From positions 108,107 to 172,106 of the forward strand of contig NW_005434638.1 in assembly GCF_000315625.1 (NCBI RefSeq): 64,000 nt of DNA, given 5' to 3'. Position numbers and translations under genes: made by a program. Positions 5,056-62,849 of this stretch are shown piece after piece. Each line of letters opens with the position of its first letter. Position 1 is the first letter of the stretch. This stretch comes from Guillardia theta CCMP2712. Its lineage: Eukaryota > Protista > Cryptophyta. Under the pieces are notes generated by a model that saw only the letters and a list, made by a program, of their open reading frames with translations, had not been told where the DNA came from and did not search any database.

Positions 5056-6938
5056 TCATCGGATGCGCATGCTGGTGTGTGAGGGAGGAGGGGGTCTTGT
5101 CTTGTGGTGGTCCACCGTCCTGGAGGTCAGCGCGTCCGATAAGCGCCATAGCACCCTCCCGACGGGTCGACCTCTGGCTTGCGCTACTTTCGTCCTGCAT
5201 GTTTGTGATCAGTAAAGATGAGGAAAGAGATGGAGAGGCAGGAAAACTTCTCTCTCACCACTCGATCCCCCACTTGAGGAGCGCAGCGACGAAGCCGTTG
5301 AGGGTGAAGTGTCCCAACCTCACTGATCCGGAGTACTTCCCGAGAGACAGGCAGTACATCCTGCAGTTAGGCATTTCAAAGAGATGCAACTCTGGAGTGA
5401 GAACGATTGGAAGGGATGGAGGTAGATGGGGGTAAAGGGTAGAATGCTGCTGCACCTGCTCTCAAGACTCGGGATGTAATGATGCATTCTCGATCCCGTA
5501 AGCGAAGATCTGATGTTGTTACAGACGAGCTTGGCCTGGATTTCTGCTGTGTGACCAAGCTTCTCATCCGGCAACCCGTCGATGCTGATCGCATCCCCGA
5601 CAGCAAAGATGTTGCTCTTATTGTATACCTTCACCATCCTCGTCAACAACCAGAGGCAGCACAGCAACGTCGACATACAAGAAGGTGGTCAGATACAAGG
5701 ATCGAGCCGTCGTCTTTCAGCGTGAACCGCATCTTTGAGTCCTTTAGGAAACCCGTCATGGGTCTGCCTCCAAGGCACCAGTACACCCGATCAGCCCTGA
5801 CCTGTGCAAAGAGCGTGAGGAGCAGAGATGGGGCGTCACTTCACTACAGTCTCTTCCCCGACGAGGAAGGTTCTAACTGCCCCGTCGCTGCCTTGCGGGA
5901 TGCAGCGGTGGCCGAGGAGGACTCGCACGTTGCGGCGGGTCAGCCACTCCAACATGTACCTCTTGGAGGAGGAGGAGGCGAAAGTCTCGCACAGACTCTG
6001 ATGTGCATCTACCAGGGTGACTGACTTGGAAGGAAACTTCTCTACTATCTCAGCCGCAAGTTCCACGCCCACCGGCCCCCCACCCACGACGAGGACACTG
6101 GAAGCCTTGGCCACCTCCTCTGCTCGGGCTCTCCATCCTTCCTCCCTCTGCTGCATCCCGAACTCCCTGGGATCCGGCTTGATGCCCTCACTGTAGTTAC
6201 TCCCGCAGGCGAGGATGAGGAAGTCGAACTTGACCCGCTGCGCTTCTCCGCTCCCGTGAGGAAGGAAATCCACCGAGCCATCGTGAACGTCGACGGCAGT
6301 CCCATGACAGAAGTTCACCCCCTGCAAGTACATCACTGACAGCATCATCCCTCCTCCTCCTTCCCCTTCACCTCGAGCAGGCTCAGCGGGAAGCAGAGGT
6401 CCTTGAACATGCTCGGCTTCACAAGGAGCTGAAGTACCCCAGGGGTGTACTCGAAGAAATCTCGTTGGTCGATGACGGTGACGTTGAAGTCATCCATCAA
6501 GTTCCTGGCGCATGACAACCCGCCGAACGATCCTCCGATGATACAGACACTCTTCCGTGCTCTCTTGCTCGTTCCCCACCGTGCACACAACCTCTTGACC
6601 CCTTGCATCATGTACAACAGCACATCCAACACTTCGAGCACAACTCGGGAGCACAAGCATGCGAGCTTGAAAGTTGTGATCCGAGCGATCATACAAACGT
6701 TCGCACATGCACGGAGGAGGATCCTTCCTATAGATGTCTCTGTTGACTTGCATGCTTGCCCCTGACCCGACGGGTTGCTCATTCGGTGGCCCAACGCGCC
6801 TTGACCATGTCGCCATCTCTTGTAGCACAAGGACAGGTCATTTTTCGGGTTGGAGTTGCAGTGATGACCGATGATTTGAAAAGAGTGCGACAGGCTGAGA
6901 GAAATGCAGACGACGATTAGTAACAACAGCTTCGACAT
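5056..6938 (-). CDS. FAD/NAD(P)H pyridine nucleotide-disulfide oxidoreductase, AIF-M2/FSP1-like, probably plastid-targeted; multi-exon
   Basis: 'VCIIGGSFGG' (FAD binding), 'VLVVGGGPVGVELAAEI' (NADH binding), 'NIFAVGD' and 'KLGHTAE'. N-terminus MSKLLLLIVVCISLSLSHS-F resembles a signal peptide followed by Phe at +1. Confidence 0.8.
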
Positions 6939-48403: not shown

Positions 48404-49824
48404 CTCTTCTTAGATGCATTCCCAATAATGCGCAACAAGAGTCTCCGTAGAACTGCAACAAGAAACACATAACATTAGAGGAGTGAAACAAATGTGTCCT
48501 TGTCAGCCAACATCCCTCTCAGACTCTCCTTCGATCACGCAATCTCTCGGTGCTTCCACTTTGAGAAATATGTCCCCTTTACCGACAGACAGGATCACAA
48601 GCAACCGAAAAGAAGACAAATGGTTTGAATCCCATCTACACTTGTATCGTGATTGGTCTTCCTTTCCTCATCTAGTTCTTGTTTTCCACCTCTCCCACGA
48701 ATGTTGCGTCATTAATTAATCTCAAAATTCGCCCCGTGTGCCCCGCGCTCACCTGGCTTGGGGCTCACGATGCTGAATTCCTGAGTTGCAGTCTAAATAT
48801 CACACCTCGTGTCAGCATTTCGCGTTCTCTGCATGCTCAAATCTCCGACCTCTCGCAGTCTCGTTCTTCACCCCTGCCTCCCCCGCTCTCCCTCTTTCTC
48901 TCCCCCACCATCCCCTCCTCATCAACTATTCCCCGCAATGCTCCAACAACCTCAACAAACTGTTTCCTTAACTACCGCCATCCGACCCCCTACCCCCCTC
49001 CCTTCCCTCCTTCACCCCTACTCCTACCGCACTTCCGGGGGTGCACCCCGGACCTCCTCCCCGCGGCTTTTGCGAGACCCCACCTCCCCCTCACCCGTTC
49101 TCCTTCCACCCAGTGCCACCCTGGACACCCACCCCTATCAACTACCTATGAATCGACCCATCTCAGTCAAAACACTCTCTTCGCGCCCCCCTACCCACCC
49201 TCTTGCCACTCGCTCTGGCATATCCGCAAATTCCGGCTCATGATCCGCGGGCTGGCTGAGTTTTACCTGCCACCGTGACGCCCGCGACCCGGTACGCGGC
49301 CCGATCGGACGACGATTTGGCCGGGCAACGAAACTTGCAGGACTTTACTCGGTTTGACACCGACGGTCACTGAGTCATCGAGCCGGGCTCGGCCGGGCGG
49401 CCCACTGGCCCGCCGTCTGCGTGCGTACCTGTCCCCGGACGCTGCCAGGCTTTTGTGAACTTCGGAACCGGAACTGCGTTCTTGACGGTCCGATCGGAAC
49501 TTAGGTGGGGGATGACTCAGAGGCGACCGTCGCTCCGCCTCAGGCAGGCACGCCGCGGCACGGTGATGAATTTCCGACTCGGATGATCGTTGTTCGAATT
49601 CCTGAAGCCCTGCCAAAGCTAGCTTTGCATCTCATTCATCAAAAGATATATCCTCTGAAAGTACCCCTATCAACCCCCACCGTTGTACGCCGAATCACCC
49701 CTTCCCAGAACCTAGTACGGGAGTATCTTTTCCAGTAGGGTACTACCCCCCCCTGTTCCCACACTGAGATACCTCGACGGTCCAAGTACTCCGGTCATCA
49801 TCACCGTCATTTCCACAGGACCCC

Positions 49825-52800
49825 CACGGGGGTGGAACTCCTCTTTTACCGGTATTAGGACGGGTACTTTTCCAATCCTTTTTACAGGGGTGGGGTAGTA
49901 GAATTTGTTGGGAATCGCAATGGCGATCCCGCGACAAACTGTTTCGAGGATGAATATCTCAAGAATGAAAATCTGTACAATGCAAAACAAACATTTTGTA
50001 TTTAGAGATACATACAAATTGTCATTCTCTATACTTGTTCGCTTTGTACACGTCTTAATTTTTGACATTTTGTCCTTTCTATCTCTTCTTCCGTAGACTT
50101 ACAACCAGACAAAGTTCGTAAACCCTGAAATCTAGGCATTTGTCCTGTGAATCCTCCTCGTGTATCCAAAGATTGAGTATGTATACGTTTCCGAGATCGA
50201 GGTTGGGACCTGCACTCATTCTCTTTGTCCCGTGTTCCTTCCTCTGCGTTGAAAAGCGTCTTCTCCCCGCGTGGTCTGCTAAGAATGATTCGCTTTTTTG
50301 AGTGGTCATACACAAAAGGCAGATTGGGATCGAATTTTTTTGAGAGCTCAGTGCATGCTTTGTTGAATTTCCTCAAGAAATCTTTCTTGTTCAAATGACC
50401 TATCAAAGACCAGAGGTTTTCAACGCTGTCTGTGCAGAGCGTCCGTGCATTGAAGTCATACTCCTTTTCACCCAACACACCTTTGTTGTTGCTCAAATAA
50501 CTCTGTATCTGTAGATGTGTGTCCATGGCTACAATCAGTCCTTCGAAGGTTACAGATGACAACCCCCTCATGTGCCTCTTGCCCACCCTCATCCAATCCA
50601 CATCTCTTAGAAGCCAGGTTCGAGCTCTAAGAATGAGATTTCTTCTTTCAGACTTGGTGAGGCCTCTCTCGTCGAAAGCTCTGTGAAGGCCGTTCATTGC
50701 TTCTGCCATTCTTGCTGTTTCAATGTGTCCCTCTGCATTCAGAAGCGATATGGCCTTGCTGCTGAACATTTTTAACATGATATCCACTGATTGAGGGTCC
50801 GTGCACCCATCGACTTCCAGCTGCGTTAGCCATGACGAATTCTTCTTGGAAATATCAGTGTACGCAGCATGCCATGTTTTAGCCTCTTGCTGTGCAGTCG
50901 GGTTTCTCCCCGAGCCAACCGTGTGCCTGACATTCTTCAGTAAATGATTGATACATGGCGCAAAGAAAAGTAGCTTCTTCGTGGTTGGAGAGATAACAGG
51001 GTTTGACAGGTACTCGTTGAATTGAAACCTAATCTTGTTTGGATCAAATTCTTCCAATCCATCTGTGATCAATCGTTCGAGCTCCCAAGGCGTGAATTTG
51101 GCTGTTTCATTCTCTGCAACCCCTTGTTGTATAATGCTATCATATCCATACCGTCGGCAGAAGATGTGGATTCTGCTGTACATCTCGTTCAAACAGGCCT
51201 TAGTTCTGGTGGCAGGAGAACACTGCAATTTCTTTTCTCTCTGGACCTGCCATATCAATTGGTTCCTCCTCAAACTCAAGACGAATTTCTCTATTTGGGC
51301 AAACTCTGCAGTGTTCATGTGCATTATTCCAGATCGAGTTCGAATTGTCACTTGGGACAAGTCAGGTCCATCATATTGGTTCATATTCAGCAAATTGCAT
51401 TCTCTCTCTACTTCCTGTGCAGTAATGGCTGGTTCAAAGTCGAATACGCATGAAATGTATGATGCGATCTCTGAGCATATCTGTGATATGCTCAGCTTCT
51501 GGGCCTCTTGTTTGATAGCCTTCACCTCCGTTATGAATGTGCTTGGATTGTTCACGTAGTAATTCCTGTATATGCAAGAAAACTCGCCGTCAAAAGACCA
51601 GACATTGAAAATAATTCCACGCTCGTGAGCCTCCTTTGTAACGGCTTCCAATATTCGAAGACCTTCAGAGGCACTTAAACTTTTGGTTGAAAAACCAATG
51701 TACATGGGGACAGGGGGTGTGCTCGCACATCCATCTTGTGCAACCACACTGATGGCATCTTCAGCCAGTTCAGCAACTGTATGCTTGTAAAATTTCTCAT
51801 TGTACTTGTACAACTCGTTTTGAAGTTCTGATTCGTTGACAGGCAGATCGCCATTCGCCATTCCCTCCAGTTTTCCTATCAATCGAGGAATTTCTACATC
51901 CATCTGTTCACAGCCTTCAATTACTGTCTTGAGGTAACGTTGATGTGGTGTGAACCTGACATCCTCTGGAGATTCGCCTCCGGTTCTATGCTTGGCAACA
52001 AATGCATTTCGAACCTTCTTGTATGCTTGCTCCATATCACTCTTCCTCTGATGCACACTCTGTTGATCGGATCTCAACATGCCAACCAGCTGTTCGCTGA
52101 TATAGTGTTCTGTCTTTCCTGTCAAACAAAACTTTTCCTTGCGATCTTCAAGCAGGTCAAGTCGCTGAGCCAAGTCAGGTTCATGACTTGTTATACCCCC
52201 CAGATCTGCTTCACATTCCTCAAACACAGAACAAAATCCTGCATTTATCATTGTTTTGTCGATCGCACAACAGTTCACTCCAGTCTGACAATGCTCAGGA
52301 TTCATTCGACGGAATTCATCCATCATAAATGTGCACACTCTGGACCTATCATTGCCATGCAGTTTCATGAGATGCCTATCTCGTTTCTGAAGAGTGGATG
52401 TGGATGGCAGAGGTAAGTTGTGTAACATCTGGTCCGCATCAAAAGTTCCAGTATTTTTGTTCCCCGGCCCTGTGAGCAAGCGATATAGACCTGAGGTGCC
52501 GACATTCCAAATTGATGCAGCGAAACTCATGACTTGCTCAGAGTATCGCATGCCTCTAGTGTCCTTTGTTCGAAAGCCTTGTCGTATCCAGTCGCTCACT
52601 ATGAATGGCATGATGGGGTGTTTGCTCTTCATGCCATCTCCTTCCTGACTGGCGAACATTACGACATCTGAAACTATGTCGGGAAGCTCAGCAGAACGGA
52701 GGTTATCCATCGCCCTTTCAACATGGCAGATGGTGAGAAAGCACTTGGCAGTAGGACTTTCGTCATTGGATTCTTCAAGAGACTCATGCTCTTCAAGAAT

Positions 52801-53796
52801 GCTTCGGATGAAATCACGTCTATCCTCCAATGGCATTGACTTGAAGTTCTCGCACATTGTATGTGCGAGGAGAGCGAATGCTGTTTTGATATTGCTGTTC
52901 TGGTCTTGGCCAATATGTTCAGGCCTTACATACCTGCATGTGGCATGTCAGTGCTCTGGTGCATTCCAGCTCGCTGGTTACCTTGAGTGATAATCGTGTA
53001 TTTGCTTTTGTAGCTCGTCAACAGTGTCATAGTGCGAAGTGGCCCAATGTCTGATTTTCTTACACAATGCCTTTTGCTTTTGCCGATGATTCTTTACTTG
53101 AATTCGAAGCTTTTGCGCGTCTATGTGCAGCTGGAATTGATCATGATGCATTTTGGCATCTGCTCCTTGTTGAAACGAGGTGAAGTAATGAAGGAAACAA
53201 TTTTTGAAGCCCTCTGCATTCTGTCCAAAGAGGTCACCTAGAAGCGTCAACTTTGCTCGCACATGAGAAGTGTTGATGGTGTGCTGGCTCAGCTTGAGAT
53301 AACTAGCCGCTACTTGTAGCAAGCTATCATCCGCGTCGCTTATCTTCAACGTTGCGTGCCCGATGTTTTGCAGAAAATGTAACAATTTCAGCACCAATGC
53401 GTCAGTGAACACTGCATAATCCTGTACAGTTTTCAAGTCGATGTCTTTGAAAGCCCGTCGACAACGTGAACAAGCTTTGATGCAGTGTTGAGGGATCGTC
53501 CGAATACTGTTCGTACTGTATCTCGTCTTACAAATAGGGCATTCCTCTCTGTCTGCTGTCGTCTTGCTCATGGCAAGGATGCAGTGCAGATTGCCCGCCA
53601 AAATTCGGATTTGAATTTCTCCCCATGGCGCGTCATAGATCTTGCATCGTTGCCTTATACCCCCTGCATGACCACCGCCCTCGATGTGCATCGCGGTCGA
53701 TGGGAGGGGTATTTAACTGAAAATTAGTACCAGGTATGGGCTAGAGGCAGTGGTTGGCCCGCGGATGAGATCGAATATAGTAGTTCCACCCCCGTG
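49825..53796 (-). mobile_element. Full-length P-superfamily-like DNA transposon (3,972 bp)
   Basis: Perfect 15-bp TIRs: CACGGGGGTGGAACT at 49825-49839 and AGTTCCACCCCCGTG at 53782-53796. Each is immediately flanked by CAGGACCCC (49816-49824 and 53797-53805). The element contains a transposase gene. Confidence 0.9.
50029..53571 (-). CDS. P-element-like DDE transposase; 2 exons (53571-52982 and 52933-50029), 1,164 aa (1,204 aa from the ATG at 53691)
   Basis: A 48-nt GT-AG intron (52981-52934, with CTGAC branch point) joins ORFs 52978-53691 and 50029-52857 in frame (...DYHSR|YVRPEH...AHTMCENF). P-type motifs: 'GMRYSEQVMSFA...LPLPSTSTLQK', 'IDKT' (D1), 'SFDG' (D2), 'CINHLLKNVR', 'DPQSVDIMLKMFS' and 'RTLCTDSVENLWSLI' (E). 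Confidence 0.85.
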
Positions 53797-54701
53797 CAGG
53801 ACCCCCGATAATACCTTGAAGGACTACCCTACCCCCCCTTTAGATGTGTACACGACTCATATCCAGATCAGCCGTTTCGACCACCGGCACGGTGGTTGAC
53901 ATAAGAATAACATGTCATACAGAGGGGTAGGGGTACTGCCGGAAACGATGTGCTCTCTACAAACTATGGGGGAGGATGGGTGCTGTCACCAGAGAGTTGA
54001 TGGGGTGGGGGTGGGGGCCAAAGGGGGTGAGGGTGGTCAATTCTTCTGGTGCGGGCCTACAGTATTGGGCGGTTTCACTTTTTACCTCCCCCTACCCTAC
54101 CCTACTGAAGTAGAACCTGACTTTACCCCACCCATGTTCTTTTAATGCTTTGATTGCACACCGCAGCTTGCCCAGGCTCCACCCCTCATTACAAGCTCTC
54201 TCGCCGTTGATTTACTATGAGAGCCTTTAAGTCGGGAGAGGGGAGGGAGGTCCTAAGTCTCATGGTTGCCTTCGCAAGGTTCAAGTACCCCTCCCTCAAT
54301 TAGGACCTATTGTTCTTCACCCACAGGGTGACCCACCCCACCTTCTCCACCGGCCCTAAAGGTTCACATTGAACGTTGCTTCATTCCCTGAACCTCACCT
54401 CCTATACCCTCCTCTTGCTCCTCCTTGCCATCGTCTACTGGGAACTGCTGCCCTGGAAACATCTCCCTCTCCCTATCTCATTCGTCTTGAAGACCTCTTG
54501 GCTCTCTCTTGCCGTTAGCTGCCTGTCCTCCATCGGAATCTCTGGAACCTGCAAATTTTGCTCACTGTCGTCTCCTGATAGGTGATCAGTCTTCTTGTCT
54601 ACATTTTGCCTGATATGTTCGTATAGCTGTGCAGGGTAATGTCCGATTCGAATCTCAGGAACTAAGAAAGCACTTTGATCTTTGAGAATCAAGACCTTGA
54701 G

Positions 54702-57651
54702 ATGAAGGGCGACATTCAGGTTGCGAACGACACTGTCATCAGTTCTTCAGCGGATACAAGTTTCAAGAGAAAAGAGAAGGTTGAAGGGGCATCGGAAACA
54801 CGAGACAACCAAATCGAAAGTTTGATTTCGGGAGCGCTAGATTCTAGTCATAATACAACAGCCATATCAGGTCAGGACACAATCATAAACACCAGCGAGG
54901 ACGTCGCAGAATCTGTCTCTGTGTTGCAAGGTCTGGGTGTGACCAAGCATGACTCAGACGGTAATTCGGAAACATCTTTCTTGACCAATGATTACTGGCA
55001 GTCGATGCAGACACCCTTGGCCTCTCATGCTGTCGGTGCGACTCTGGCACACGAGTTGTCGTTCGAAGGGAATGAAGCAGCTCTGCATCACATCATCAGC
55101 AACCATCCCTTCCTCATCGAGTCAAAGACCATCGACGGCGAAACTCCTGCACATCACGCAGCTGCAGGCGGTCAGTCTCGAGTCTTGTACCTTCTAGCCA
55201 ATCTGAGCAAAACAATCCTGCTCGAACCTGACTATGACGGTTGGACTCCGGCGCACATGGCGGCATTTTATGAGCAACCAGACACGATCTCAGTCTTGAA
55301 AATTCTTGCACCCGAGTCATTCCTGTTAAAGGACAAGAAGGGGAGATTGCCCGTCGATCTCACCAGCAACAAGCATTGTCTGAGTCTGATGAAGGATTCA
55401 ATCGTCGAAGCTGACAACTTGAAGATATCTGCTGCTGACCCCACCTCAACTACTGCTGAGGTCGACCCGGCTGTGGAGGAAGCCGCCTCTAAGGCCGTTG
55501 CTGAGGTCGCTCCTGCTACAGAGGAGGCTGCTACCGAGGCTGTTGAAACCACCGCTGCTACCGAGGCTGTTGAAGCCACCGCTGCTACCGAGGACCCCGG
55601 ACCTGAAGACGCCGCTTATAAGGCTGCTCAAGCTTCGGAGGAAGAGAGCCCAGCAGAAGAGGTCGCCGCATCTGTGGCTGTCGTCGAGGTCGCGCCTGCT
55701 GATCAGACCGCGCCTCCTGCTGTCGAGAAGGCCGCGCCTGCTGCTGCTGCCGTCGAAGAAATGGCCGCTCCTGCTGATTCTCCTGCGGAGGAGGAAGCCG
55801 TCCCTGCTCCTGCCGTCGAAAAGGCGGCCTCTGCTGCGGCGGCGGAGCAGGTGCATACTGCTCCTGCTTCCGAGGAGGCAGCTCCAGCTGCTGCTGCCGT
55901 CGAGGAAGTGGCCGACCCGGCCGCTGTCGAGAAGGCCGTCCCTCTACCTGCTGAGCAGGCCCCTGCTCCTGCTCTTGCAAGTGATGAGTCCCCTGCTGCT
56001 GCCGTCGAGGAGGCCGCTCTTGCTCCTGCTACTATCGAAGAGCAGTTGGCTCCTGTTACTGCAGAAGAAGCTTCTCCAGCCGCTGTTCAGGATGCTGCTC
56101 ATGGTGCTGCTGCTGTCGAGGAGGCTGCTCCTGCCTCTGCCGTCGGGGAGGCTGCTCCAGCCGCTCCTGCTCCTGTTGCTGTCGAGGAGGAGGCTTCCGC
56201 CTCCCCCGCCGCCGCCGCCATCGAGGAGGCAGCAGCAGCAGCTCCTTCCGTAGAGGAGGCTGCTCATGCTGCTGCTGTCGAGGAGGAGGCTACCCCTGCT
56301 CATGGTGCTATCGAGGATGCTCCTGCTGCTGCTGTTGTTGAGGAGGAGGCCACGCCTGTTGCTGCTGCTGTCGAGGAGGCTGCGCTTGCTCCTCCTGCTG
56401 CTATCCAAGAGGAGGCTGCCGCTGCAGCTACCGCTCCCGTCGAAGAGGCTCCTCCTGCCCCTGCAGCTATTCAAGAGGAAGCCGCGCTTGATGCTGCTCC
56501 TGCTGTAGAGGAGGCTGCTCCTGCTGCTGCCGCCGCCGCCGCCGCCGTCGACGAGCAGGCTGCTCCTGCTGCTGCCATCGAGGAGGCTCCTGTGGCTGCC
56601 TTCGGGGAGGCTGCGCCTGCTCCTGCTCCTGCTGCTGCCGCTGCCGTCGAGGAGGCTGCTCCTGCTGCTACTGCTGCGGAGGCTGCGCCTGCTGCTGCCG
56701 CTGCCGTCGAAGAGGCTGCGCCTGCTCCTGCTCCTGCTGCTGCTGCTGCTGCTGCTGCCGTCGAGGAGGCTTCGCCTGCGCCTGCTGCTGCCGTCGAGGA
56801 GGCTGCTCCTGCTGCTGCGCCTGCCGCTGCCGCTGCGGTTGAGGAGGCTGCTCCTGCTCCTGCTGCTGCTGCTGCTGCCGCCGTCGAGGAGGCTGCTCCT
56901 GCTCCTGCTCCTGCTGCTGCTGCCGCCGTCGAGGAGGCTGCTCCTGCTCCTGCTGCTGCCGTCGAAGAGGCTGCGCCTGCTCCTGCTCCTGCTCCTGTCG
57001 CTGCCGTCGAGGAGGAGGCTGCTCCTGCGCCTGCCGCTGCCGCTGCCGTCGAGGCGGAGACTGCTCCAGCTCCTGCTGCCGCTGCCGTCGAAGAGGCTGC
57101 GCCTGCTGCTGCCGCTGCCGTCGAGGCGGAGGCTGCTCCTGCTTCTGCCGTTGCCGTCGAAGAGACTTCGCCTGCTCCTGCTGCTGCCGCTGCCGTCGAG
57201 GAGGCTGCTCCTGCTCCTGCCGTCGAGGCGGAGACTGCACCAGCTGCTCCTGCTTGTACCGTCGAAGAGGCTGCACCTGCGCCTGCTGCTGCCGTCGAGG
57301 AGGCTGCTCCTGCTCCTGCTCCTGCTGCTGCCGCCGCCGTCGAAGAGGCTGCTCCTGCGCCTGCCGCTGCCGTTGAGGAGACTTCGCCTGCTGCTGCTGC
57401 TGCTGCTGCTATCGAGGAGGCTGCTCCTGCTCCTGCTCCTGCCGTCGAGGCGGAGACTGCACCAGCTGCTCCTGTCGCTGCCGTCGTGGAGGCTGCGCCT
57501 GCTCCTGCTCCTGCTGCTGCCGCTGCCGTCGAAGAGGCTGCTCCTGCTCCTGCGCCTGCCGCCGCCGTCGAGGAGGCTGCTCCTGCTGCTGCTGCCGCCG
57601 TCGAGGAGACTGCTGCTGCTCCTGCTGCTGCTGCTGCTGCTGCTATCGAGG

Positions 57652-57682
<31 letters not shown>

Positions 57683-60600
57683 CGTCGAGGAGGCTCCTTC
57701 TGCTGCTGCTGCTGCCGTCGAGGAGGCTGCTCCTGCTCCTGCCGCTGCCGTTGAGGAGGCTGCTCCTGCGCCAGCCGCTGCCGTCGAGGAGGAGGCTGCT
57801 CCTGCGCCTGCTGCTGCCGTCGAGGCGGAGACTGCACCAGCTGCTCCTGTCGCTGCCGTCGAGGAGGCTGCTCCTGCTTCTGCTGCTGCCGTCGAGGAGG
57901 CTGCTCCTGCTCCTGCCGCTGCCGCTGCCGCTGCCGTCGAGGAGGCTGCTCCTGCGCCTGCCGCTGCCGCTGCCGCTGCCGTCGAGGAGGCTGCTCCTGC
58001 GCCTGCCGCTGCCATCGAGGAGGCTGCTCCTGCGCCTGCCGCTGTCGTCGAGGAGGCTGCGCCTGCTCCTGCTCCTGCCGCTGCTATCGAGGAGGCTGCT
58101 CCTGCGCCTGCCGCTACCGTTGAGGCGGAGACTGCTCCAGCTGCTCCTGCTTGTACCGTCGACACTGCTGCGGTTGAGGAGGCTGCTCCTGCTGCTGCCG
58201 CTGCCGTCGAGGCGGAGGCTGCTCCAGCTGCTCCTGCCTGTGCCGTCCAAGAGGCTGCTTCTTCGCCTGCTGCTGCCGTCGAGGAGGCTGCGCCTGCGAC
58301 AGCTGCTGCCGTCGAGGAGGCTGCTCCAGAGCCTGCCTCGGCCGTCCAGGAGGCTGCTCCAGAGCCTGCCGTTGCCGCTGCCGTCGACGACGAGGCTGCT
58401 GCTGCTGCTGCCGTCGAGGAGGCTCCTGTCGCTGCCGTCGTCGAGGAGGCTGCTGCTCCCGCTGCTATCGAGGAGGCTGCTCCTGCTGCTGCTCCTGCCG
58501 TCGAGGCGGAGGCTGCTCCAGCTGCTCCTGCCTGTGCCATCGAGGAGGCTGCGCCTACTCCTGCGCCTGCCGATGCCACTGCCGTCGAGGAGGCTGCTCC
58601 TGCTCCTGCCGCTGCTGTCGAGGAGGCTGCTCCTGCTCCTGCCGCTGCTGTCGAGGAGGCTGCTCCTGCTCCTGCCGCTGCTGTCGAGGAGGCTGCTCCA
58701 GCGCCTGCTGCTGCTGCCGCCGTCGTCGAGGAGGCTGCGCCTGCTGCTCCCGTCGAAGAGGCTCCTGTCGCTGCCGTCGAGGAGGCTCCTGCTGCTCCCG
58801 CTGCTATCGAGGAGGCTGCTCCAGCGCCTACCTGTGCCGTCGAGGAGGCTGCTCCTGCTGTTGCCGCTGCTGTCGAGGAGGCTGCTCCTGCTCCTGCCGC
58901 TGCCACTGCGGTTGAGGAGGCTGCTCCTGCTCCTGCCGCTGCTGCCGTCGAGGAGGCTTTGCCTGCTGCCGCTGCCACTGCGGTTGAGGAGGCTGCTTTA
59001 GCGCCTGCTACCGCTGCTGCGGTTGAGGAGGCTGCTTTAGCGCCTGCCGCTGCCGCCGCCGTCGAGGAGGCTGCTCCTGCTGTTGCCGCTGCCGTCGAAG
59101 AGGCTGCTCCTGCTGCCGTCGAGGCGGAGGCTGCTCCTGCTGCCGTCGAGGAGGCTGCTCCTGCTGCTGCCGCGGCCGTCGAGGAGGCTGCGCCTGCTCC
59201 TGCTCCTGCCGCTGCTGTCGAGGAGGCTGCTCCTGCGCCTGCTGCTGCCGCCGTCGTCGAGGAGGCTGCTCCTGCTGCTGCCGTCGAGGAGGCTGCTCCT
59301 GCTGCCGTCGAGGAGGCTCCTGCTGCTTCCGCTGCTATCGAGGAGGCTGCTCCAGCGCCTACCTGTGCCGTCGAGGAGGCTGCTCCTGCTCCTGCCGCTG
59401 CCACTGCGGTTGAGGAGGCTGCTCCTGCGTCTGCCGCTGCTGCCGTCGAGGAGGCTGTGCCTGTTGCCGCCGTCGTCGAGGAGGCTTTGCCTGCTGCCGC
59501 TGCTGCGGTTGAGGAGGCTGCTTTAGCGCCTGCTACCGCTGCTGCGGTTGAGGAGGCTGCTCCTGCTCCTGCCGCTGCCGCCGTCGAGGAGGCTGCTCCT
59601 GCTGTTGCCACTGCCGTCGAGGAGGCTGCTGCACCGCCTGCCGCTGCCACTACTGTCGAGGAGGCTGCTGCACCGCCTGCCGCCGCGGTTGAGGAGGCTA
59701 GTCCAGCGCCTGTTGCTGCCGTCGTCGAGGAGGCTGCTCCTGCTGCTGCCGCCGTCGTCGAGGAGGAGGCTGCTCCTGCTGTTGCCGCTGCCGTCGAAGA
59801 GGCTGCTCCTGCTGCCGTCGAGGCGGAGGCTGCTCCTGCTGCCGTCGAGGAGGCTGCTCCTGCTGCTGCCGCGGCCGTCGAGGAGGCTGCGCCTGCTCCT
59901 GCTCCTGCCGCTGCTGTCGAGGAGGCTGCTCCTGCGCCTGCTGCTGCCGCCGTCGTCGAAGAGGCTGCTCCTGCTGCCGTCGAGGAGGCTCCTGCTGCTC
60001 CCGCTGCTATCGAGGAGGCTGCTCCTGCTGTTGCCGCTGCTGTCGAGGAGGCTGCTCCTGCTCCTGCCGCTGCCACTGCGGTTGAGGAGGCTGCTCCTGC
60101 GTCTGCCGCTGCTGCCGTCGAGGAGGCTGTGCCTGTTGCCGCCGTCGTCGAGGAGGCTTTGCCTGCTGCCGCTGCCACTGCGGTTGAGGAGGCTGCTTTA
60201 GCGCCTGCTACCGCTGCTGCGGTTGAGGAGGCTGCTTTAGCGCCTGCCGCTGCCGCCGTCGAGGAGGCTGCTCCTGCTGTTGCCACTGCCGTCGAGGAGG
60301 CTGCTGCACCGCCTGCCGCCGCGGTTGAGGAGGCTAGTCCAGCGCCTGTTGCTGCCGTCGTCGAGGAGGCTGCTCCTGCTGTTGCCACTACTGTCGAGGA
60401 GGCTGCTCCTGCGCCTGCTGCTGCCGCCGTCGTCGAGGAGGAGGCTGCTCCTGCTGCCGTCAGGGAGGCTGCTCCAGCTCCTGCTCCTGCTGCCGTCAAG
60501 GAGGCTGCTCCTGCTGTTGCCACTGCCGTCGAGGAGGCTGAGCCTGCTCCTGCTGCTGCCGCTGCCGTCGAGGAGGCTGCGCCTGCTCCTGCGCCTGTTG

Positions 60601-62174
60601 CTGCCGCTGCCGTCGTCGAGGAGGCTGCTCCTGCTGCTCCCGCTGCTATCGAGGAGGCTGCTCCTGCACCTGCCGCTGCCGTCGAGGAGGCTGCTCCTGC
60701 TGCCGCTACCGTCGAAGAGGCTACCCCATCCGCTGCCATCGAGGAGGCTGCTCCTGTTACCGTTGTCAAGGCGGAGGCTACACCTGCTGCTGCCGTCGAG
60801 GAAGCCGCCGCCGCCGCTGTCGAGGTGGAGGCTGCTCCAGCTCCAGCGCCAGCTGTTGAGGCGGAGACTGCTCTAGCTCCTGCCAATGCCGTCGAGGAGG
60901 CTGCTCCTGCTGCTGCCGTGGAGGAGGCTGCACCTGCTGCTGCTATCGAGGAGGAGGCTCCTGCTCCTGCTGTCCAGGCGGAGGCTGCACCTGCTGCTGC
61001 CGTCGAGGCGGAGGCTCCTGCTGTCGAGCAGGTTTCCACATCCGCTGCTGCCATCCAAGAGGAGGCGGCGTCTTCTGCTGCTGTCGAGGAGGAGGCTACC
61101 CCTGCTGCTGTCGAGGAGGAGGCTACCCCTGCTGCTGCTGTCGAGGAGGCTACCACTGATGTTGCAGCAGATCTGTTGCTGCTGGAGGCAGGGACACAAA
61201 CGGAAGCGATTGACATGCAAGTAGCTCCCGAGGAGGCCGCCAAGGTCGCTCCCACTAGAGAAGAAATCGACACCTCTGACGCTGCCGTCGAGACTACCGC
61301 TGACACTCCTCCTGCTGCTGCTGCCGCCGCCGTCGAGGAGACCCCGCCTGCTACTGTTGCCGCTGTCGACGAGGCTGCTGCTCCTGCTGAGATGGCAGCG
61401 GCGGAGGAGGCTGCTCCTGCCGCCCCCGCCGTCGAGGAGGCCCCGCCTGCTTCTGCTGCCGTTGAGGAGGAGGCGGCCATTGATGAACCCGCTGTCGAGA
61501 GCCCTCAGTCGGTGGAGGAAGCGGTTCAAACTGATGAAACCGTGCTTGAAGCAGCAACACAAACCGGGTCCTGTGACGTCACAGATCCTTCCGAAGCCGT
61601 GCCCGCAGCTCCTGCTGCTGCTCCTGCCATCGAGGAGGAGGCCGCGCCTGCTGCTGCTCTTACTGCCGCTGTTCAGGAGGAGGAGTCTGCTGCTGCTGTT
61701 CAGGAGGAGGAGTCTGCTGTTACTGCTGCTATTGAAGAGGAAGAGGCCCCTGCGTCTACTGCCGAGGAGGAGGCCGCGTCTGATGCTGCTGCTGCTGCCG
61801 TGGAGGAAGCCACGCCTGCTGCTGCCGCCGCCGCCGCCGTTCAGGAGGCTGCGCCTGCCCCCCCCGCCGCCGCTGCTAATGCCGTCGAGGAAGCCGCGCC
61901 GGCTGCTGCGGTAGTGGAAGAAGAGGCCCCGCTTGCTGCTGCTATTCAGGCACAAGTCCCTGCTGCCGCTGTCGAGGAGGAGGCCGCGCCTGCTGCTCCT
62001 GCTAACGTCGATGAAAATGCCATTTCTGCCCCTCTGGAGGAAGAGGCTGCTGCTGCTGCTGCTGCGGCGGCGGCGGCGGCGGCGGCGGTGGAGAAGGAGG
62101 CCGCACCTACTTCTGCTCCTGCTGCCGTCGAGGAGGCCGCGCCGGCTGCTGCTGCTGTCAGGGAGGAAGAAGCG

Positions 62175-62206
<32 letters not shown>

Positions 62207-62849
62207 CGTTGAAGAAGCCGCGCCGGCTGCTGATGTTGATGAGGAGGCCGCGCCTGCTGCTCCTGCTGCCGTCGATGAAGATGCCATTTCTGCCCCTCTG
62301 GAGGAAGTGGCGGCGGCGGCGGCGGCGGCGGAGGAGGAGGAGGCCGCACCTACTTCTGCTGCTGCAGCGGAGAGGGAGGATGCTGCGCCTGCTACGTCAG
62401 AAGAAGAAAAGACGGAAGGAGGGTTGTTGAGTCAGCAGGTCGTCTCGGGGGAGGCTGAGGCTGGGGTTGAGTCCGTCCTGCGCTCGCTGCTTGTGTCGCT
62501 GCGGTCAGCTCTTGAAGTCTCTTCGCTGCGAGAGGCCGTCGAGTCCCACATGGCAGAAGTTTACAAAGTCTTTCCCAGAGGCGACTCGCAGACGCTTCAG
62601 AGTCAGCTGGATGAGGTTTCTCAGCTCAAGTTCGAGCTCAGGCTATGCTTCTTTCTCTGCTGCCTCGGAATTCTCTTCTCAAACCTCATCAGCTTCCGGC
62701 ATGACTTTGCTCAGATCGCGTGGAGATTTGCAGTCACCTGGTTCCAGATGTTGTTTGCACTTTGGGCCTTCGCCATGCTGCATCGAAGTGTGTTCTCACG
62801 ATATGGGCGGAGAAGTCCGACCAAGAAGAAGGACGAGAAGAGACAATAG
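54702..62849 (+). CDS. Giant (~2,700 aa) ankyrin-repeat protein with an Ala/Pro/Glu tandem-repeat stalk and C-terminal hydrophobic (TM) segments
   Basis: Single uninterrupted ORF. Ankyrin motifs 'DGETPAHHAAAGG', 'DGWTPAHMAA' and 'KKGRLPVDL'. Over 2,000 aa of VEEAAP(AP)nA(n) repeats; two hydrophobic helices near the C-terminus. Confidence 0.75.
55440..62400 (+). repeat. Coding minisatellite (GTCGAGGAGGCTGCTCCTGCT...) with higher-order duplications
   Basis: Degenerate tandem units; near-identical long blocks begin at ~59065 and ~59765. Confidence 0.9.

Follow-up and report, generated by a model that had tools for sequence, protein, structure and literature searches.

A very probable divergent relative of the P element as an autonomous transposon in the nuclear genome of Guillardia theta

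Introduction

Guillardia theta is a model for secondary endosymbiosis. In a 64,000 nt stretch of the nuclear genome of strain CCMP2712 (contig NW_005434638.1, positions 108,107 to 172,106 of the forward strand; hereafter the window), a 3,972 bp segment at positions 49825-53796 ends in inverted repeats and contains a gene for a large protein, of a kind annotated in Guillardia as 'hypothetical protein' fragments. This locus raises the questions of whether the segment is a transposon, whether it has moved recently, and to which transposase lineage its enzyme belongs. An earlier note, made from the sequence alone, had proposed an intact and probably recently active P-like element. Here, we report that the segment is very probably an autonomous cut-and-paste transposon whose transposase lies on a very divergent branch of the P/THAP9 lineage, to which the P element enzyme belongs.

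Results

Termini and target-site duplications

The limits of the element were read directly from the sequence and checked with a script. The sequence CACGGGGGTGGAACT at 49825-49839 (plus strand) and its exact reverse complement at 53782-53796 (minus strand; AGTTCCACCCCCGTG on the plus strand) formed perfect 15 bp terminal inverted repeats (TIRs), and the inverted repeat extended imperfectly for about 8 bases further inward, to about 49847 on the left. Adjoining both ends was a direct repeat with no assigned strand, CAGGACCCC, at 49816-49824 and, identically, at 53797-53805, which constitutes a 9 bp target-site duplication (TSD). These repeats had been described before, and the description was confirmed base for base. 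Both termini read CACGG and match the CANRG type, which the earlier note had given as the terminus consensus of the P superfamily.

The transposase gene occupies the minus strand between the TIRs. Its 3' untranslated part forms the left subterminal region (49840-50028), between the TIR and the stop codon at 50029-50031, whereas the right subterminal region (53692-53781, minus strand), running from the first ATG to the right TIR, would by position hold the promoter and 5' leader.

Copies of the element in the Guillardia genome

The whole G. theta assembly (87 Mb) was searched at the DNA level for further copies. The complete 3,972 bp element was present on four contigs, C36 (the window), C42, C24, and C80; three of the copies were 100% identical over 3,972 bp and the fourth differed at 6 positions. 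Each full-length copy stopped exactly at the TIRs and lay between its own 9 bp repeat (CAGGACCCC, CAGCACGAT, GCCCAGCTC, and CAGCAGACC, respectively), the flanks being unrelated to one another, and the left terminus was the same in all four. The occurrence of the same ends around four copies, on four contigs and within four different 9 bp repeats, is far beyond chance.

Internally deleted derivatives retaining both ends were also found, for example, on C69 (2,555 bp), C5 (2,643 bp), C27, and C64. Three diverged subfamilies (L028, L048, and L052) had the shared ends and perfect 9 bp TSDs; the subfamily proteins were 45-54% identical, yet the terminal 15-mer was common to them with 0-1 mismatch. 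In all, the TSD was 9 bp in eight of nine elements examined, one of these (the deleted copy L008) matching at 8 of 9 bases, and the exception was an 8 bp repeat at the deleted copy L005. With up to one mismatch allowed, the terminal 15-mer occurred 51 times in the genome, compared with 8 times for a reversed control. A domesticated single-copy gene was rejected on copy number, TIRs, and TSDs, because TIR-bearing sister copies and deletion derivatives accompany the gene. The search for sister copies that the earlier note had proposed thus yielded both full-length copies and deletion derivatives, and none of the findings that the note had named as contrary to its reading was borne out.

Taken together, the TIRs, the TSD, the presence at several unrelated sites, and the intact transposase gene are those of an autonomous class II element. 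The identity of three copies over 3,972 bp fits the recent insertion by an autonomous element that had been suggested earlier, implying that this is a real and recently active transposon, which is probably still mobile at present.

Three further observations concern possible derivatives or relatives. At C11:1091652-1092075, two terminal 15-mers in inverted orientation lie 424 bp apart, a candidate derivative resembling a miniature inverted-repeat transposable element. In contigs of runs X1, X3, and X7, loose ends at 49825 continue from the left TIR to a flanking sequence, ...CTCAAGTCTCGGTG, that none of the copies examined shares; this indicates either an additional copy or read-through transcription at another locus. 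Runs X12 and X13, labelled organism C, contained 25% and 17%, respectively, of the sampled 31-mers of the element; these could come from a related element in another species or from a mixed culture.

Transposase gene and transcripts

Two minus-strand open reading frames (ORFs) were found within the element, at 53691..52978 (237 aa) and 52857..50029 (942 aa). Between them, the minus strand has GT at 52981-52980 and AG at 52935-52934, and removal of these 48 nt (52981..52934), which carry an in-frame TAA at the 5' end, gave a single 3,615 nt frame of 1,204 codons with one terminal stop. Exon 1 would then span 52982-53691 and exon 2 (spliced residues 237-1204) 50029-52933. Both exons were conserved across the diverged subfamilies. 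In two of these, a GT..AG intron, 53 nt long in one and 56 nt in the other, occupied the homologous codon position (after IHDY..); neither number is divisible by three, and removal restored the frame. Comparison of the subfamilies therefore gives good support for the predicted 48 nt intron (52934-52981, minus strand). Translation probably begins at the ATG at 53571 (MSKTT...), since protein-level conservation with the other subfamilies begins there.

RNA reads and contigs covered the element at low depth, and raw depth was greatest on the left of the element, where the 3' end of the gene lies (4-12x at 49747-50040, run X21). In contigs of X1 and X3, 46 nt at 52496-52541 were skipped, with GT..AG borders on the plus strand, antisense to the transposase. 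The joined form was absent from the genome assembly and from the 18 copies examined, indicating that the runs hold RNA. Some of this RNA, at least, seems to stem from an antisense transcript that crosses the transposase gene, is spliced, and possibly has a regulatory role; such a transcript would not remove the sense intron.

N-terminal region

Exon 1 encodes an invariant CxxC-x19-CxxC zinc finger, followed by a helical domain and a long helix. A low-confidence model of exon 1 (predicted local distance difference test, pLDDT, 64) showed four short strands, the helical domain, and a helix of 40 residues. These parts may serve in DNA binding and dimerisation. The C2CH THAP domain found at the N-terminus of Drosophila P and animal THAP9 was not detected by Pfam or by a fold search, and the zinc finger stands in its place. 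Since THAP domains are reported to be restricted to animals (PMC7776569), the absence of THAP may be usual for non-animal P-like elements.

Predicted fold and catalytic core

The product of exon 2, which contains a putative helix-turn-helix (HTH), a split RNase H-like core into which an all-helical domain is inserted, and a C-terminal tail that is basic and disordered, was modelled with AlphaFold from a 61-sequence alignment, with pLDDT 70-98 over residues ~255-870. Residues are numbered below by exon 2; adding 237 gives the spliced numbering. An alignment that included fragments (A4) was discarded because MAFFT had misplaced N-terminal pieces, and for A5 and A6, collinear stretches were used.

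When the model was submitted to Foldseek, the Drosophila P element transposase (6pe2/6p5a) ranked first (E 1.4e-3). The match was more than twice as strong as that to any other solved transposase and spanned the P-specific insertion domain, at 14% identity in the structural alignment. This was the comparison that the earlier note had proposed, and the outcome it had named as contrary to a P-like element, lack of a structural match to an RNase H-like DDE transposase, was not observed. The model thus points to the fold of the P superfamily, an RNase H-like core split by a P-type helical insertion (the GTP-binding domain). Among the matches listed from the ESM Atlas, the nearest clusters by shape and language-model features that bear a Pfam assignment were all P/THAP9; a few unnamed clusters were also listed, and none of the MULE (Mutator-like element), hAT, or Kolobok families was among them.

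In the model, strand 1 (220-228, NCCAIDKTM, including D225) is separated by a helical insertion of about 165 aa (~229-391) from strand 2 (392-400), which is followed by strand 3 (408-415), a helix (421-437), and strand 4 (444-447). D448 lies directly after strand 4 (WSFDGEF), and a mixed segment of about 200 aa (~453-650) leads to strand 5 (654-659), after which comes C660-x-x-H663 (CINHLLKNVRH). An all-helical domain of about 170 aa (~661-830) then separates strand 5 from the helix that carries the putative catalytic E838 (DSVENLW). We propose D225, D448, and E838 (D462, D685, and E1075 in the spliced protein) as the catalytic residues. Among the 61 aligned relatives, D448 was conserved in 26 of 26, H663 in 57 of 57, and E838 in 50 of 54, and position 660 was D or C; the motif after strand 5 is CxxH in the Guillardia protein, compared with DxxH in most relatives. 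The motifs listed in the earlier note (RYSEQV, LPLPSTSTL, CINHLLKNVRH, DPQSVDIMLKMFS, and DSVENLW) were all present.

In P transposase, the GTP-binding domain follows strand 5 and precedes the last helix (PMC7776569). The all-helical domain at ~661-830 is, in the model, its positional equivalent. In Drosophila P, GTP is contacted by K385, K400, V401, S409, F443, D444, N447, and D528. By spacing alone, V716, S724, F753, D754, and D835 of the Guillardia protein would match V401, S409, F443, D444, and D528; the positions of K400 and N447 would be taken by S715 and G757.

Sequence searches and distant relatives

A word-index homologue search returned Guillardia proteins only, annotated as 'hypothetical proteins'. 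A profile of the Guillardia subfamilies was then compared exhaustively with 1.84 billion representative proteins, and 138 relatives were recovered, 25 of them at E<=1e-10. The relatives matched in two blocks, from strand 2 to strand 4 of the core and from strand 5 to the catalytic Glu. The closest came from marine and other metagenomes (e.g., P0012 and P0016-P0018). An N-terminal YqaJ-like nuclease domain was present in 17 of 39 relatives scanned, including P0020, P0034, and P0035, and some relatives carried helix-hairpin-helix motifs; P0020 is a snail YqaJ fusion of 1,583 aa (Batillaria attramentaria KAK7507914.1). The Pfam domain TNP-like_RNaseH_N (the P-type core, PF21787) was matched by 5 of the 39, one of them, P0020, above the curated cut-off (25.8 vs 24.6 bits), and other transposase families were matched by none of the 39.

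This clade of YqaJ fusions and metagenome proteins is the closest to the Guillardia protein outside Guillardia by profile search (E 1e-27 to 1e-10 for the stretch between strand 5 and the catalytic E). Its members are 17-32% identical to the Guillardia protein and share with it the motifs D/CxxH..N.R, DxQS...A...FS, D..G.....R, and E(N/T)FF, whereas their YqaJ-like and helix-hairpin-helix domains were absent from the Guillardia protein in the Pfam scan. In the literature searched, YqaJ is named with the PHIS/ISL2EU group and not with P-like elements.

One marine-metagenome scaffold (L054), which encodes the relative P0016 with a 560 aa ORF just upstream, has 20 nt inverted repeats at 445-464 and 5706-5725 that begin with CACCG, are 95% complementary, and lie 5.3 kb apart. 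The 9 bases flanking these repeats differ, and no TSD was found on the scaffold.

Sequence to the right of the element

About 870 bp beyond the right end of the element, a 2,724 aa open frame of Ala/Pro/Glu-rich repeats (EEAAPAAAAAV-like) begins on the plus strand of the window (54675-62849). Its GC content is ~0.70 and its AT skew is strongly negative.

Discussion

Comparison with known elements

The Guillardia element resembles the Drosophila P element (6P5A/6PE2) in that its enzyme is predicted to have the P fold and the element would work in a P-like manner. Given the observed anatomy, copy structure, TSDs, and fold match, the transposase would bind the 15 bp inverted ends and nearby sites, pair the ends, excise the element, and join its 3' ends to the target with a 9 bp stagger between the two joining points. 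The 9 bp duplication would result when this stagger is repaired, and faulty gap repair after excision would leave internally deleted, non-autonomous copies. Catalysis would fall to the proposed triad, and the enzyme may dimerise and may use a nucleotide cofactor.

The element also departs from canonical P elements, as the earlier note had foreseen, in its 9 bp TSD, its lack of THAP, its lack of a Pfam P match, and its large core insertions. The Drosophila P element has an 8 bp TSD and 31 bp TIRs (PMC7776569), compared with 9 bp and 15 bp here, and an 8 bp (7-8 bp) TSD is the rule for the superfamily, whereas eight of the nine Guillardia elements had 9 bp. The Guillardia transposase would be 1,204 aa long with one intron, whereas that of Drosophila P has 751 aa and three introns; the ~165 aa helical insertion between strands 1 and 2 and the ~200 aa segment between strands 4 and 5 are both missing from the Drosophila enzyme. 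The hAT (Hermes) and Transib/RAG1 transposases resemble the Guillardia protein in having a DDE core of the RNase H-like type, into which a further domain is inserted after strand 5 and before the last helix. hAT elements also share the C/DxxH motif, and their TSD is 8 bp.

Evidence against a P-like, active element

Several results weigh against the assignment to the P lineage and against activity at present. A Pfam scan of the 942 aa ORF gave no match at E<=1, and that of the 237 aa ORF gave nothing relevant; the P models (PF21787 RNaseH_N, PF21788 GBD, PF21789 RNaseH_C, and PF12017 HTH) thus had no significant match. Scanned over the whole genome, PF21787 gave no meaningful match, and PF12017 gave only a 17.6-bit noise match away from the element. 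P transposase was not recovered from PDB sequences by phmmer or by two profiles (A6 and A3). Placement with P rests on the modelled fold and on transitive homology, not on direct sequence similarity.

The proposed active site and DNA-binding region are also affected. In the D..D..E triad that had been recognised earlier, D448 and E838 were upheld by conservation, but the first Asp, assigned from the model strand 220-228 and from the structural-alignment offset to P residue D230, is the weakest of the three, because strand 1 is covered by just 4 Guillardia sequences, and a different Asp nearby, D400, is conserved in 25 of 30. For the P-type HTH, the motif letters (RYS...LPLPSTSTL) are present, but the region was modelled at pLDDT <50 and its structure was not confirmed. 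With regard to the two-exon gene, the open frame and the intron position conserved in the subfamilies bear out the earlier proposal, but the spliced form of the 48 nt intron was not seen in RNA reads or contigs, and the contigs of X1, X3, and X7 that span it retain it in full. Since these contigs may derive from antisense RNA, they neither confirm nor refute the intron. Finally, the data available included neither an empty site nor an excision footprint nor a polymorphism between strains, and activity at present is deduced.

Alternative explanations

Three other explanations were weighed against an autonomous, very divergent member of the P lineage. Mutator-like (MuDR/MULE) elements typically have 9-11 bp TSDs and also carry a C/DxxH motif. 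The 9 bp TSD of eight of the nine elements, including the one with 8 of 9 bases matching, fits this range, and the fold search could not score MuDR, since no MuDR transposase chain was among the fold matches listed. On TSD length, MuDR is the only serious rival, yet nothing else supports it: the MULE domains PF10551 and PF00872, which are often accompanied by a SWIM zinc finger, were unmatched in the Guillardia protein and in the 39 relatives, and the ESM Atlas neighbours among the matches listed included no MULE family, making a Mutator-like element highly improbable. The Guillardia elements might instead form a separate, undescribed superfamily that has only an ancient hAT/P/MuDR/Kolobok-type core in common with P. 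This would accord with the absence of any sequence method that ties the protein directly to P, with the different TSD length and N-terminal DNA-binding domain, with the two extra core insertions, with only 14% identity in the structural alignment, and with nearest relatives that are unnamed metagenome proteins and YqaJ-nuclease fusions. Yet no other solved transposase gives even half as strong a structural match as P, the match to P includes the P-specific insertion domain, an intermediate relative (P0020) reaches the curated cut-off of TNP-like_RNaseH_N, and the motifs around the GTP-binding positions of P are recognisable. Superfamily limits are in part conventional, and we consider a separate superfamily unlikely.

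The copies could also be intact but immobile, with their identity due to recent segmental duplication, gene conversion, or an assembly artefact. In favour of this, neither excision nor an empty site nor a polymorphism was observed, RNA coverage was thin, and no spliced form of the sense intron was detected. However, the copies all terminate precisely at the TIRs, in flanks that are unrelated and with a different 9 bp TSD each, and new TSDs are not created by duplication or conversion. The left and right flanks of the element in the window are single-copy in the genome, which excludes segmental duplication and also means that the genome has no paralogous counterpart of the site without the element. 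Derivatives with internal deletions but both ends intact are, moreover, a usual by-product of cut-and-paste transposition. There is thus little reason to regard the copies as immobile, and we favour an autonomous cut-and-paste transposon of the P lineage.

Placement and significance

P-superfamily elements outside animals have already been reported, for example, in Allomyces and Pucciniales (PMC5751038). No description of P-like elements in Guillardia was found in the literature searched, and Repbase or Dfam may already contain Guillardia entries. A further, tentative reading is that the Guillardia elements, their marine-metagenome relatives, and the animal YqaJ fusions together make up a deep and so far undescribed sister lineage to the P superfamily, marked by the 9 bp stagger, the non-THAP zinc finger, and the strand 1-2 insertion, which has kept part of the nucleotide pocket and whose identical Guillardia copies are naturally active; we hold this possible but doubtful. 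To include such a clade in P or to rank it next to P is in part a choice of convention.

Current family models overlook this P-like lineage and leave its genes as 'hypothetical protein' fragments. A divergent and apparently live relative in a cryptophyte provides a far outgroup for sorting ancient features of P from animal-specific ones, namely, the insertion domain, the nucleotide pocket, the 8 bp stagger, and THAP. If the deep sister lineage is real, use of a nucleotide cofactor would predate the branch of animal P and THAP9. Three identical, intact copies of about 4 kb with short, defined ends are a starting point for insertional mutagenesis and transgenesis in Guillardia theta, and if these copies are naturally active, the element could be used as a genetic tool in cryptophytes.

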